Notes: generated by a model from the sequence alone, not told the origin. A DNA stretch of 45,195 nt from Macrostomum lignano (GCA_002269645.1 NIVC01004455.1:1-45195); one strand, 5' to 3'; numbered from the stretch's first letter, positions 12,756 to 33,325 are shown. Made by a program: numbers and translations.

Positions 12756-13303
12756 ATGACAATCACTCGAGCTCTGTTTGGAATTTTTGTCTGCCTGTGC
12801 CTGGCTGCGGGATGCGCTGAAGGTGATTGAAGATTGATAACTGTATACTCTCTCTGATTTCCGCATAGTCCAGCCGCTACAATACCTGACTTTGCCTTAT
12901 TAGGCAGTCAATCAAGAATAACCATTGAAATGCTTGAAACTTATGGGTTAAATGTTTTTACTGTTCCTATTTTCTGACAGCGTTTACCCGCATCGGTTGC
13001 TACAAGGACAAGGCGAGTCCCAGAGACCTGCCGCTCCTCCATCACTCAAAGTCGACTACGCCCGAGTCCTGCGTGAGCCGCTGCAAAGCCAGAAAGTACA
13101 AGTACGCCGGTCTGCAGGCTGGCGCTTGGTGCCTCTGCGGCAACTCGTACGGTCGGCACGGCAAGGCGAGGAACGCCGACTGCAACATGCGGTGCAGCGG
13201 AAACAGCAGGAAGACCTGCGGCGGACCCTGGAGAAACGACGTGCTCGCCACTGGATACTCTTCAAGACCAAAGCCATCGGCGTCTAATAACAGTAGGCTT
13301 TGA
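12756..13303 (+). CDS. Secreted single-WSC-domain protein, 129 aa; exons 12756-12822 and 12981-13303
   Basis: Exon 1 MTITRALFGIFVCLCLAAGCAE (signal peptide), GT at 12823, ttttctgacAG at 12980, phase 1 in frame. Exon 2 carries the full WSC cysteine pattern (GCY..C...C..YAGLQAGAWCLCG..C..C.G....CGG). Confidence 0.88.
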
Positions 13304-13629
13304 CAGCTTTTTCTTGAGTGAATGCAGATGGGTCACTGCAAGAGATTCAGAGAATTTGGAGCCCGTTACTTTATTGAGGGACAGGCTATTGAAACCCGCG
13401 GATTTTTAACCTGCTGAATTTCAATCTCTGGAACTATTGTTGCTTGCATTCTTAAATCTGAAGTCATACTAAAGCAAAAACTCATTAATACTTAGGATAG
13501 AGGTAAACAAAAATTGGTGTATATAAGTGCTAAATTAAGGTTCGAGGCAAGCATTGATCTCGTTTGATGGGGTGCAAGGCGGAATGACAGGAAATGTGTC
13601 TTAAGCATGCGCGTTGACAAACCCTGGCC

Positions 13630-13860
13630 GCTGGCCTATGCCTTTCTCTCCGTCCCTCCGGTCTTTGAAACTTCTTTCCTCTCTCCTCTCCACTCTTCTT
13701 ATCTCTTCTCTCTTTGATCATGTCTTCTCCTCTCTTCTATATTGTCTCTACTCTTTTCTCACTCCTCTCTACTAGCTTATCTCTCATCTCTCCATCCCCT
13801 TTCTTCTTTCTAATCTCTACTCTCGTCTATGTCTACTCTCTCTACTCTCTCTACACTGCC
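13630..13860. repeat. Degenerate CT-rich low-complexity tract
   Basis: ctctct/ctcta runs. Confidence 0.8.
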
Positions 13861-30000: not shown

Positions 30001-33000
30001 AGACTCGGCCAGGTCTCCGACCGGGCCTGGAGACTCCCGCTCTGCTGCACCCCTCCTGCTGCCTTGGTCCCGTCTCTCCTGCCGCCACACCTGCCTTTCC
30101 GGAGCCCCCTACCCCTTTCTGTACCTCCCCCTCTACCCTATCTCTTCTGTTTCCGCCCTATTCTTCCTGTACTTTCTCTATCTCCTCTCTTTTTTTGTCT
30201 CCCTCTGCACTCTTTTCCTGCGCTGTCCCCTCTTTCCCTGTGTCTACTTACAGTATTTTGTGTGCTCACCGTCTCCCCATACCCTCCCAAACTCCCAAAC
30301 GGTGACGCAAGTCGTGTGACCCCTTCTTCCCCCCGATGACTCATCGATGACTCACCCCCCTCTCTTGCGCAACCTTTTCTCACGCCATGGTTCTCCTCCC
30401 CAAATTTCTCATGCGACACCCACCCCACCTCCGCTTCTATTGTTCTCGTTTTTGCTTTTGTTCTCTCGACCCCCACCAATTATCACATTTTCTCCGATTT
30501 TCTCTTTCTTTTGTTCTCGTTTTCGCACCTAATTATCACCTTTTCTCCAATGTTTACATTTCCATTGTTCTCGGTTTTCCCCAATTATCCCCGATTTCCA
30601 ATTCCTTTGTTCTCGACCCCAGCCCTATTGTTCTCAATGTTTGCTTGCGCAACACTTTCGCGACCACCCGCTGCGCCAATTATCCCCCACCCCACCTCCG
30701 GATTGCGCAATTTCCCTATTTCTCATGTTGCTATGCCGGTCTCATGCTTCTCATCATGACTCATTCTGACGTCATTCTGCCGGCAGCCAATCAGAGAGAG
30801 GGAGCCATGGTAACGACCTTGAGGAGGCGGCTGTGAGGTCTATAAAAGGAAGCGATTTCGGCATGAGAATCCTCAACCTTTTTTTCTCTCCTCGTCCTTC
30901 TTTGGACTTGCAGTCAGATTGAGTTCTGACCCATTCGTCTATAAGACGAATCCCTGCCGGTCCGCGGTCTGTTACCGCCAAGTTATCCTTAGCTCCCCAA
31001 GTGAGCTCGCCTATCGGCCAGCGGTCTGATACCGCCCAGCATCATCAGCATCGCCTGATCTACATCAGCGCCTCGTCGCTCCAGCGCACCGCCGCTTCAC
31101 TGTCTGCCTGACTGCAGCCTACAGCCGCCCTCGGTCACTCCGCCTCTCTCTCTCTCTGTGCAGCTGCCGGTAAGTTCCTGTTACTAATTTGTGCTCTAAT
31201 TGCCTTTGCTTATCCGGGGTTTGCCTATTTTCCATTGTCTGATTAGAGAGCTGAGCCAATTGTGATACCGTATCTTTTGCTGTATTTTACTCAATAGTGA
31301 AGCCGCCTAATTGCCTGATTATTCGCCTAAGGGCCTAATTATTAACTATTAACTAACTTCATCATTATTCAATCTTTCACCATCATTTCACTCATGGCTT
31401 GCTAAGCCTTTCTCCCGGGGTGGCAAAGCATAAGGAAGTTTGGGTAAGCTAATGGCCTCTCCCGTGCAAAGCCCGCCTGTGAGTGCGTGCTGCGGGGCCG
31501 CGTGTGCGTGCAGTAGAGGGATTAGCAGAAGTCTCGCTGGTGGCTGGTGCTTGGTTGCGAACTGGCAGGGCTGAGACGAAGTCTTGATGGCGCTGATCTA
31601 GTTGCGAGCCGGCAGTGCTGAGTAGGAGTCTCGGTGGTGCTTAGTTGCGAGCTGGCAGGGCTGAGTAGGAGTCTCGGTGGCGCTGATTTAGTTGCGAGCC
31701 GGCAGTGCTGAGTAGGAATCTCGGTGGGACCTCCAAAATTATGTCACGATGTTGGCGTAGCGGCTAGCTATGCTATGACCCTTAAAAGGGCCGTTTTAGT
31801 CCCAAAGTAAGTTGAAGTCAACTCTTGTAAAGCGGATTTGGTAGCGGAGCACTTGGCGATAAAGGCAGGAACTGCCGTAGTTGGTTTTATTGGTAGTATC
31901 AATATTAGGCTTGGTTAAAATTTATGTCAATAAACAAACTATAGCTTTCTGGGCACTGGCGGCTGCAACAATGGTTGAAGACAAGTTGGATATGAAGTCA
32001 AGTGACAGACGAATGGTGCAATGGCGATGTAACGTGATGAGCAATGGCAATGAGCACAGTGAAGGCGGTGAGACGCAGTAGGCAGGCAGATGAGCAGTGG
32101 CGAGGTTGGCGTCAGCCGTGGCGTGAGATAAAGGAGGCTCGAGGCAGCCAGACAGAGAGAAGGAAAACAAGGCTAGACGAGGCTAGGCAAGCCAGACGGG
32201 ACGGAGGACAAGCCTAGGGGAGAGAACACAGAACACAAGTGAAGCCCCCAGCCCGCCAGGCGAAGGTTAATAAAGAGCGCAAAAGGGGGTAGCGTAAACA
32301 CGGAGAGTTTTCATTGGCTGGCGAGAGAACTTGAAATTATCGATCGTGCCAAAATTATACGGTCGCGAGAGAGGATAGCAAAATATACAGTGAATTAGAA
32401 ATTGCCACAAAATCGTTGGGCACTACTACAAGTAAACGTCGCAATAAACAAATGGAAAAGTTTAGTTGAAACGGTGAAACTGAAGGGTTGAAACTATAGA
32501 GAAACAGCAGTCCAACGGCCCTTTTGCGGGACCACTTAAACTAGCAACGTCACACCCGCCTGTGAGTGCGTGCTGCGGGGCCGCGTGTGCGTGCAGTAGA
32601 GGGATTAGCGAGTCTTGGCACAGAATGGCAGTAGGAAGGTTGCAACCCCATGCTGACGCGTCCCTTCGCCCTGAGTAATCTAAACTGTAGGCAGTACATG
32701 TTCGCCTCATACTACTCTTAGTAATCAAAGTCGCAAGTCAGCCTCGCTCACAGCCACAAAGGATCCCCTGCTGAGAAATCCTCCAGGATTGAGCCCAGAG
32801 TTCCCGATCATGCCCCAAGCAGAGTCCCTGTACTCGGCTGCATGCGTCTCCCCTGTTAGCCTAAATCCCCTGGTAGCCAATCCAGGCGGGGCTCTAGCCT
32901 CGAGAGGTCTGGTAGAAAGATCCAGGTGCGCCAGGTCACATAGAGTGGTGGCAGCCACTCGGTCATACCATGACCGAGTGACCAACTATTGCACCTTGGC

Positions 33001-33325
33001 TACAGGTGGGGTCCATGTGGGTCCTTGGCCCTCTGGTCACGAAGCGCTACCAAAAGCTACTAATCATGTGGGCGGGACAGTCTGGTGCTGGAGGTCCGTC
33101 AGGTCGTTGCCCGGTCATAGGCAGCCTACGGTCATTGCCCCCTCTAGTCATGCGTTCGTCTCTCTACGGAGCGGGCAGGCGACAAGGGCGGTTACATCAT
33201 TTGGATTATAAATGGTAAGTCTGTGCAGCAGATATTCTACACTTACCTGACCCGGCGCTGTCGGTAACCGACTGGAAAAGGAAGAGACATGCGGCCAGCA
33301 GTACAGCTCTACTGACCAGTTGCAT
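27088..33325 (-). CDS. Secreted cationic triple-LCCL protein, ~440 aa; exons 33325-33247, 29453-29085, 28918-28502, 28044-27691, 27287-27213, 27116-27088
   Basis: Exon 1 MQLVSRAVLLAACLFLFQSVTDSAGS + GTAAGT (phase 1). Three phase 1-1 exons with LCCL core WGTDIYT.DS.(I/L)G.AAVH.G..Y.GS...G; a basic 75-nt exon; a stop exon. Total 1323 nt, in frame. Confidence 0.8.
29605..29810 (-). pseudogene. Degenerate fourth LCCL exon copy
   Basis: 3' half matches exon 29453-29085 including the donor; the 5' part decays through many small deletions and has no acceptor. Confidence 0.75.
30337..30847 (+). promoter_or_regulatory. LTR U3-like enhancer/promoter: AP-1 x3, C/EBP x3, CRE, CCAAT, TATA
   Basis: TGACTCA at 30337, 30348, 30757; TTGCGCAA at 30365, 30645, 30703; TGACGTCA at 30767; CCAAT at 30787; TATAAAA at 30841; donor GTAAGT at 31170. 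Confidence 0.65.
31527..32554 (-). mobile_element. Nested LTR-retroelement fragment: 813-bp LTR (32554-31742), tRNA-Gln PBS (31735-31718), ~190-bp repetitive leader
   Basis: LTR TGTGACG...CGTGACA with minus-strand AATAAA near 31886; PBS TGGAGGTCCCACCGAGAT is the exact complement of a tRNA-Gln 3' end including CCA. Confidence 0.85.

Follow-up and report, generated by a model that had tools for sequence, protein, structure and literature searches.

A repeat-rich, structurally unstable locus in the genome of the free-living flatworm Macrostomum lignano contains three distinct genes, each for a small secreted protein composed of extracellular binding modules. The locus occupies positions 12,756 to 33,325 of the stretch analysed here (the window), which is the entire 45,195-bp contig NIVC01004455.1 of the Mlig_3_7 assembly (GCA_002269645.1). 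Three spliced genes with GT-AG introns were assembled from it: one with two WSC-domain exons, one encoding a PAN-like domain followed by a concanavalin A-like (ConA-like, LamG_3-type) domain, and one encoding three LCCL domains, referred to below as the WSC, PAN-like and LCCL genes. On balance, and with only slightly more confidence than doubt, we read the locus as an unstable one in which three secreted-protein genes are neighbours and the LCCL protein serves in surface secretions by binding polyanions or glycans. A preliminary description, made from the sequence alone, had proposed three host genes, each beginning with a signal-peptide exon that ends in a phase-1 intron and each encoding only putative binding modules. 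The gene models bear this out: intron 1 is in phase 1 in all three genes and all products look secreted, with signal peptides assessed by eye (a short run of charged residues, then a hydrophobic core, with small residues ahead of the likely cleavage site). The same description recognised no described system, and this needs amending for the LCCL gene, which was annotated before as PAA47432.1, yet is uncharacterised; the WSC and PAN-like genes are new annotations.

The LCCL gene lies on the minus strand. Its six exons rebuild the annotated 440-aa protein BOX15_Mlig028021g3 (PAA47432.1; Mlig028021 below) residue for residue, and all five introns are in phase 1. The exons, and one relic between them, are as follows.

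33325-33247, minus strand: exon 1, signal peptide; 79 nt, then a phase-1 intron
29835-29579, minus strand: in intron 1, a decayed, frameshifted partial copy of a cationic LCCL exon, the relic of an older duplication
29453-29085, minus strand: exon 2, cationic repeat 1; 369 nt, phase 1-1, with 30 Lys+Arg, 3 Asp+Glu and an isoelectric point (pI) of 11.7
28918-28502, minus strand: exon 3, cationic repeat 2; annotated donor after 28502
28044-27691, minus strand: exon 4, a third, older repeat, 52% identical to repeat 1
27287-27213 and 27116-27088, minus strand: exons 5 and 6, a short C-terminal tail, basic then acidic, and the stop codon

Four of the six exons stood in the preliminary description, which placed the donor of exon 3 at 28550, 48 nt too early, and missed the two small 3' exons. 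The protein consists of a signal peptide and three LCCL domains joined by Lys/Arg/Ser/Thr-rich linkers, and Pfam finds all three domains at 161 bits (PF03815), far over the cut-off of 22.6 bits. It is extremely basic. The mature annotated protein has 91 Lys+Arg against 17 Asp+Glu and a pI of 11.5, above that of every one of its 119 best homologues (median 7.8, maximum 10.4).

The LCCL gene is transcribed and spliced, and its protein is made and reaches surface-deposited material. The Mlig_3_7 annotation that contains it was derived solely from RNA sequencing and transcript assemblies (PMC5730564). For the protein we turned to the mass spectrometry of M. lignano adhesive footprints in Dataset S2 of Wunderer et al. 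2019 (PMC6410801). One entry, RNA1509_10169 (equal to RNA815_26218), is an LCCL protein with a calculated pI of 11.18 and a Firmicutes protein as best UniRef match, and its peptides IGTAAVHAGLLR and IWGTDIYTSDSR are exact tryptic peptides of Mlig028021. Each peptide is present in both cationic repeats, and the peptides do not distinguish the window from its two sister loci, described below. The adhesive or secretory alternative that the preliminary description had mentioned thereby gains support. Full-text literature searches for the identifiers Mlig028021, RNA815_26218, RNA1509_10169 and RNA1310_29404 found no mention, and the supplements of PMC5816591, PMC5946080, PMC12896417, PMC5977470 and PMC4490696, some of whose tables were covered in part, yielded no expression data on these genes.

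The other two genes present a different picture. Both in the window and at one sister locus (L002), the transcript-based annotation lists, up to 10 kb to either side of LCCL, only that gene and a gene for a CCP1-like protein; the PAN-like gene is uncalled at both. The WSC and PAN-like genes are unannotated and no expression evidence for them was found, which speaks against a cluster. Peptides of the two proteins were likewise not found in the tables of PMC6410801, whose underlying transcriptome database may be without these genes.

We propose that the LCCL protein would be a secreted multivalent polycation, with three binding domains carried on Lys/Arg/Ser/Thr-rich linkers. In mucus or adhesive secretions it would attach to glycans or surfaces of negative charge and cross-link them. 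It probably acts outside the cell as such a polycation, and antimicrobial agglutination is possible. Its presence in footprint material bears on this role. Attachment and release in M. lignano are governed by Lys/Arg-rich secreted proteins and negatively charged sugars (PMC6410801), and cochlin, also an LCCL protein, binds sulfated glycosaminoglycans (PMC9987951). The exon duplications seen in the LCCL and WSC genes would be by-products of unequal recombination between short tandem units; exons of phase 1-1 can change in copy number without harm to the reading frame.

Several points weigh against this proposal. The footprint list that contains the LCCL protein also contains tubulin, GAPDH, ribosomal and ciliary proteins, and because it includes so many intracellular proteins, presence in it is no proof of specific secretion or adhesion. 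The literature yielded no record of tissue localisation or RNA interference for the LCCL gene. Mile-ao1, an adhesive-organ LCCL protein of another flatworm, gave no phenotype under RNA interference (PMC6745481). Glycan or surface binding by this LCCL subtype is a predicted function and, in our view, no more than the best-supported guess. The absence of the WSC and PAN-like genes from the annotation may be due to low or conditional expression, and the structural differences between contigs could in part be long-read assembly errors in a redundant assembly.

The WSC gene lies on the plus strand, at the left end of the locus.

12756-12822, plus strand: exon 1, start codon and signal peptide (MTITRALFGIFVCLCLAAGCAE); 67 nt, phase-1 donor GTGATT, splices in frame
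12981-13292, plus strand: exon 2, a complete WSC domain with 8 Cys; phase-1 donor ACA/GTAGGC at 13292/13293
14049-14368, plus strand: duplicate WSC exon, a candidate exon that has a phase-1 acceptor and shares the stop codon of the read-through form of exon 2

Exon 2 can end at its donor or, alternatively, by read-through to a TGA at 13301-13303. Pfam recovers two WSC domains (PF01822) at 138.9 bits against a cut-off of 27.8, with eight cysteines in each, which is the full WSC signature, and the best solved relative is the WSC domain of Kremen-1 (E 9e-15). The mature one-domain product has 20 Lys+Arg, 5 Asp+Glu and a pI of 9.96; the charge counts of the preliminary description, 20 to 5 here and 30 to 3 in the LCCL exon at 29453-29085, were exact. 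It is most closely related to other basic WSC proteins of M. lignano and to a protein of a SAR324 bacterium (46%). In the protein collection searched, which includes the annotated LCCL protein of this assembly, no protein was more than 46% identical to it. The nearest M. lignano paralogues are strongly basic (pI 9.9 to 11.8), so cationic WSC proteins are a theme in this animal, where they appear to form a family. Outside the window, the paralogues P0128 and P0129 consist of a signal peptide, a single WSC domain and a long Lys/Arg-rich tail that is extremely basic (pI 11.4-11.8), and P0121 is a basic protein with three WSC domains. Large multi-WSC proteins (for example RNA1310_2275, 1377 aa) are frequent in the peanut agglutinin (PNA) pull-down, footprint and tail lists of PMC6410801, and proteins with WSC repeats may contribute notably to what M. 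lignano secretes at its surface.

The PAN-like gene follows on the same strand.

24274-24634, plus strand: exon 1, signal peptide and a Cys-rich PAN/Apple-like domain; 361 nt, then a phase-1 intron
25282-25537, plus strand: exon 2, first part of a ConA-like beta-sandwich
25688-26132, plus strand: exon 3, the rest of the ConA-like domain to the stop codon

Paralogues align unbroken across both predicted exon junctions. The mature product is not cationic (34 Lys+Arg, 28 Asp+Glu, pI 8.7). In Pfam the window protein reaches 15.1 bits for PAN_4 (E=0.024), under the cut-off of 27, and has no LamG match. Among nine family members, PAN_1 matches four, PAN_4 three and Laminin_G_3 one (E 1.3e-4), with PAN_1 scores of up to 20.8 bits in paralogues against a cut-off of 21.4. 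A family profile matches the apple domain of Toxoplasma MIC4 with E 0.007, and several paralogues bear the UniProt label 'Apple domain-containing protein'. A word-indexed homologue search returned nothing for this protein. An exhaustive phmmer search of 1.84 billion cluster representatives returned 11 relatives; the six that were looked up are all from M. lignano, and one relative bears a locus tag of the transcript-based annotation. The PAN-ConA-like family has, in these sequence searches, so far been seen in M. lignano only.

From a single sequence, AlphaFold2 (AF2) gave a useless model of this protein, with a predicted local distance difference test (pLDDT) score of 34, and the rerun with a 9-sequence alignment was used instead. 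In it an all-beta domain spans residues 122-353 (pLDDT, averaged over 10 residues, mostly 56-91); the predicted template modelling score is 0.65, and the PAN part is modelled at low confidence. Foldseek matched residues 122-353 to heavy-chain (HC) fragments of tetanus and botulinum neurotoxins and to the lectin domain of Trypanosoma cruzi trans-sialidase (E 3e-8 to 9e-7, probability 1.0). On the predicted structure, the C-terminal domain belongs to the concanavalin A-like lectin/glucanase superfamily, as a jelly roll of LamG_3 type. The earlier label 'PAN-LamG' therefore stands at the level of fold and superfamily, by way of paralogues and the predicted fold, and does not extend to the laminin-G families proper, for which Pfam gave no match in the window protein.

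We considered, and rejected, a test for purifying selection on the PAN-like gene from the comparison of the window with its two sister loci. A contrast of one substitution in 1062 exonic nt with 1.4% divergence in non-coding sequence collapsed: the PAN-like introns carry no substitution in 797 nt between loci, and nearly all of the differences fall in intron 1 of the LCCL gene. The copies are too similar for any inference. Two further observations concern the sequence of the PAN-like gene and its surroundings. A tRNA-like stretch (GTAGCCTAGTGGTTAGAG ... GGGATTCGATTC) lies in its intron 1 at 24833-24905 on the plus strand; ARAGORN calls no tRNA there, and it may be a tRNA-derived short interspersed element. 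The PAN-like and LCCL genes run towards each other, and a (CTGT)90 microsatellite at 26129-26490 lies precisely between their 3' ends, overlapping the region of the PAN-like stop codon.

Both cationic genes contain very recent exon duplications, as the preliminary description had reported. In the WSC gene, 14053-14535 is a copy of 12988-13470 (483 bp, 99.6% identity), with two synonymous differences in the exon and 167 identical nucleotides downstream; because the copy begins 7 nt inside the exon, the phase-1 acceptor of the duplicate lies in unrelated sequence. Over its first 369 nt, LCCL exon 3 agrees with exon 2 at all but two positions (367 of 369); about 90 nt of the upstream intron are identical as well, and the tandem unit measures 535 bp. 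Duplication extends well beyond these exons. The WSC gene is flanked by two copies of a block of about 9 kb, and the following elements are involved.

15009-24118, plus strand: copy 2 of the ~9-kb block; copy 1 is at 2874-12157, and the two are 96-98.6% identical
20569-23178, plus strand: degenerate, frameshifted long terminal repeat (LTR)-type retroelement with gag-like, aspartic protease, reverse transcriptase and RNase H regions; its copy is at ~8430-11009
12143-12810, plus strand: 670-bp segment comprising the region upstream of the WSC gene and the greater part of its exon 1; further copies at 3543-4212 and 15689-16348

The block contains a 16-mer satellite, a dead copy of WSC exon 1, several minisatellites and the degenerate LTR retroelement. 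In both further copies of the 670-bp segment codon 5 is TGA rather than CGA and similarity ends 12 nt before the donor, and for these two reasons both extra copies of exon 1 are dead. The gap between the WSC and PAN-like genes, passed over in the preliminary description, is 9.7 kb of duplicated satellites and degenerate retroelement. At the junction near 12157 there is only short microhomology. We considered an assembly mis-join as the source of the WSC gene's position; the short microhomology at the junction of the block end with the 670-bp segment fits a real rearrangement better, without proving it.

Repeats and redundancy abound in the Mlig_3_7 assembly, where blocks duplicated at 95% identity or more make up 180 Mb (PMC5730564), and near-identical copies of the locus can be compared within it. 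Clustering at 90% places two further proteins of this assembly, g1 and g2, with the LCCL protein; both are encoded on contigs other than the window. At the two sister loci, L002 and L003, the gene order is CCP1-like carboxypeptidase, LCCL, PAN-like, collinear with the window. The PAN-like gene, introns included, is more than 99.9% identical between the window and the sister loci, and for that reason the synteny says little. The repeat-rich LCCL intron 1 (29454-33246) carries 2.4% substitutions relative to L002 and L003, compared with 0% in the PAN-like introns. Left of ~24,000 the window is just 95.7-98.5% identical to L002, and divergence shifts sharply along the contig.

The copies differ in what they contain. 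Full cationic LCCL exons number two in the window, two at L002 and three at L003. At L003, exon 4 has also lost 1 bp from a G5 run, which is why g2 is annotated as a truncated 344-aa protein; the deletion may be a sequencing (long-read indel) error or a real pseudogenising change. These two features of L003 lie at 13842-15278 and 15795-16147 of that locus. The PAN-like gene is intact at two loci, and its exon 1 at L003 has two indels. At L002, which lies on a 775-kb contig, there is only one repeat block; it is shorter, lacks the equivalent of 4767-10783 and has one dead exon-1 copy, and the retroelement at 20569-23178 is missing from the matching place there. The WSC gene is absent at L002, so its linkage is not conserved even inside this genome. 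Taken together, the sequence comparisons support a very recent gain and loss of modules within a general local instability that is not aimed at coding modules. The birth and death of phase-1 modules that had been suggested thus holds as recent gain and loss (LCCL exon counts of 2, 2 and 3, a WSC gene absent at L002 and a decayed exon copy), and fails as something specific to coding modules, because the 9-kb non-coding blocks around them were duplicated too.

The type of LCCL domain bears on both function and origin. In cochlin and Limulus factor C, the LCCL domain has four conserved cysteines that form two disulfides. The Macrostomum repeats have two each (C-x15-C or C-x19-C near the N-terminus), and where cochlin has a Cys directly ahead of AAVH, repeats 1-2 carry G or T and repeat 3 carries G or M. 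The repeats lie nearer to the bacterial type, which is free of cysteines. Among solved structures the best match is cochlin (E 9.5e-6). Per domain, identity is 50-55% to bacterial and metagenomic proteins, 44-46% to Adineta and ~35% to cochlin over 62 residues, and over the whole protein it is 35-42% to bacterial tandem-LCCL and Adineta proteins. The best non-self matches with an organism name are all bacterial tandem-LCCL or bdelloid-rotifer LCCL-chitinase proteins, the others being metagenomic proteins, and the closest match of all is on a contig with bacterial-type neighbour genes.

We regard the WSC, PAN-like and LCCL genes as neighbours of like kind rather than as a demonstrated functional unit. 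In favour of a unit, the genes are adjacent, LCCL and WSC occur in one metagenomic protein (P0152) and WSC and PAN_4 together in P0144 and P0145, and at another M. lignano locus a merged gene model (P0177) joins a PAN-ConA-like paralogue to a WSC segment, a hint that genes of these two kinds are neighbours more than once. Against it, the WSC and PAN-like genes are on the plus strand and the LCCL gene on the minus strand, with the PAN-like and LCCL genes convergent. The functional cluster of the preliminary description is not upheld: WSC linkage is lost at L002, transcript and protein evidence is for the LCCL gene only, strands differ and the gap is rich in transposon sequence. A co-regulated innate-immunity cluster of cationic lectins that bind, agglutinate or kill microbes is accordingly improbable in our view. 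It would draw together the signal peptides, the cationic charge and the lectin-type modules, and there are precedents in the LCCL fragment of cochlin, which entraps bacteria (PMC7526977), in Adineta, where LCCL arrays are joined to a family-19 chitinase domain, and in the joining of LCCL and WSC in one protein elsewhere. However, expression evidence was not found for two of the three genes, the WSC gene is missing at one sister locus, transposon DNA lies between genes on differing strands, the PAN-like product is not cationic, and the LCCL domains are just ~35% identical to cochlin and without two of its conserved cysteines. Nothing that we found bears on immunity. Somewhat more credible, though still a minority view for us, is a chance neighbourhood in which only the LCCL gene is functional, and segmental duplication brought along the WSC and PAN-like genes as recent duplicates without expression or as incipient pseudogenes. 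Both are absent from the transcript-based annotation at all loci examined, and the collection that holds the annotated LCCL protein has no identical WSC protein; dead exon-1 copies flank the WSC gene, which L002 lacks, and PAN-like exon 1 has its two indels at L003. Yet both reading frames are fully intact with canonical splice sites, all eight WSC cysteines are kept, the PAN-like gene is intact at two loci, and its family has at least 11 representatives, one with a locus tag of the transcript-based annotation. The similarity of the copies, too great for a selection test, also counts against settling on decay.

A further alternative concerns the LCCL gene itself, which might be a bacterial multi-LCCL gene acquired by horizontal transfer that later gained introns, a signal peptide, cationic charge and amplification. 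The organism names of its best non-self matches, the bacterial-type genes beside the closest one and the gradient of per-domain identity from bacteria through Adineta to cochlin all point that way, as does an independent annotation whose best match is a Firmicutes protein at 1e-35 versus human vitrin at 7e-07. We nevertheless hold transfer to be doubtful. The gene has five phase-1 spliceosomal introns at domain boundaries, and its neighbour at three loci, the CCP1-like gene, is metazoan. The starts of repeats 1 and 3 are homologous, and these two repeats share a Cys pair that is missing in the bacterial relatives examined, which points to internal exon duplication in an intron-bearing ancestor. 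Moreover, bacteria dominate the database, and the per-domain comparison covered bacterial, metagenomic, rotifer and cochlin sequences. A broader reading combines these threads: the LCCL gene would be a domesticated bacterial-type array, transferred or relict, that is now an extremely cationic, copy-variable surface or adhesive component and acts with the lineage-specific WSC and PAN/ConA-like lectins beside it as a glycan-binding secretory toolkit. We give this combination little credence. Our preference stays with the more limited reading, an unstable locus whose LCCL protein is a polyanion- or glycan-binding constituent of surface secretions.

Other features of the window lie outside the three genes. 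Upstream of the LCCL gene, at all three loci, is the gene for the CCP1-like cytosolic carboxypeptidase (TPR_CCP1_N and Peptidase_M14 domains; 1175 aa), which in the window spans 35902-43325 and beyond on the minus strand. Its span includes a number of long minisatellite arrays, with repeat units of 38 nt (38074-38697), 28 nt (39688-40726) and 45 nt (42926-44027). To the left of the block, in unique sequence, 2043-2148 (minus strand) matches the Rfam Vault RNA model over its full length (44.3 bits against a gathering threshold of 34, E 9.8e-7).

At present this work is an annotation refinement of three uncharacterised genes, one of them in GenBank already. The locus also serves as an example of exon-level copy-number change between near-identical copies of a genome region. 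Should the LCCL protein prove to be a functional constituent of mucus or temporary glue, the model of M. lignano adhesion would gain a small and tractable protein that is polycationic and lectin-like, and the cysteine-poor LCCL repeat, widespread in bacteria and rotifers, would have its first assigned function.

Among known systems, the flatworm adhesive-secretion proteins are secreted like the LCCL protein, and Mlig-ap1 works via Lys/Arg-rich regions and negatively charged sugars (PMC6410801). Mlig028021 was detected in footprints and, like Mile-ao1, it contains LCCL. Unlike the LCCL protein, Mlig-ap1 and ap2 are giant, multi-domain proteins without LCCL. The WSC protein has the full signature of Kremen-type and fungal WSC domains (PF01822) with its eight cysteines, but it is a stand-alone, secreted, strongly basic protein of one or two domains, without a transmembrane segment or kringle/CUB partners. 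For the PAN-like protein, the likeness to PAN/Apple domains such as that of Toxoplasma MIC4 lies in cysteine spacing and weak profile matches, and the likeness to ConA-like lectin domains (Laminin_G_3, the lectin-like N-terminal half of the receptor-binding fragment of clostridial neurotoxins, trans-sialidase) in its predicted C-terminal beta-sandwich. It differs from these references in being under every Pfam cut-off and in having ~10% sequence identity to any solved structure.

The LCCL protein itself resembles cochlin and Limulus factor C (PF03815; 1JBI) in the core motif around AAVHxG, in its three Pfam matches and in being extracellular. It differs from cochlin in its low identity (~35%), in having no Cys before AAVH, in having no vWA or other partner domains and in being extremely basic. 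With the bacterial tandem-LCCL proteins (P0002, P0014, Sphaerochaeta, Saprospiraceae) and Adineta it shares the WG(T)D-YT-DS...AAVHAGLL...VGQTG motifs, arranged in those proteins in 3-6 tandem repeats. The bacterial genes, however, are intronless and encode Ser/Thr/Pro-rich linkers of near-neutral charge (median pI 7.8), whereas the flatworm protein has Lys/Arg-rich linkers, a Cys pair in each repeat and a eukaryotic gene structure.

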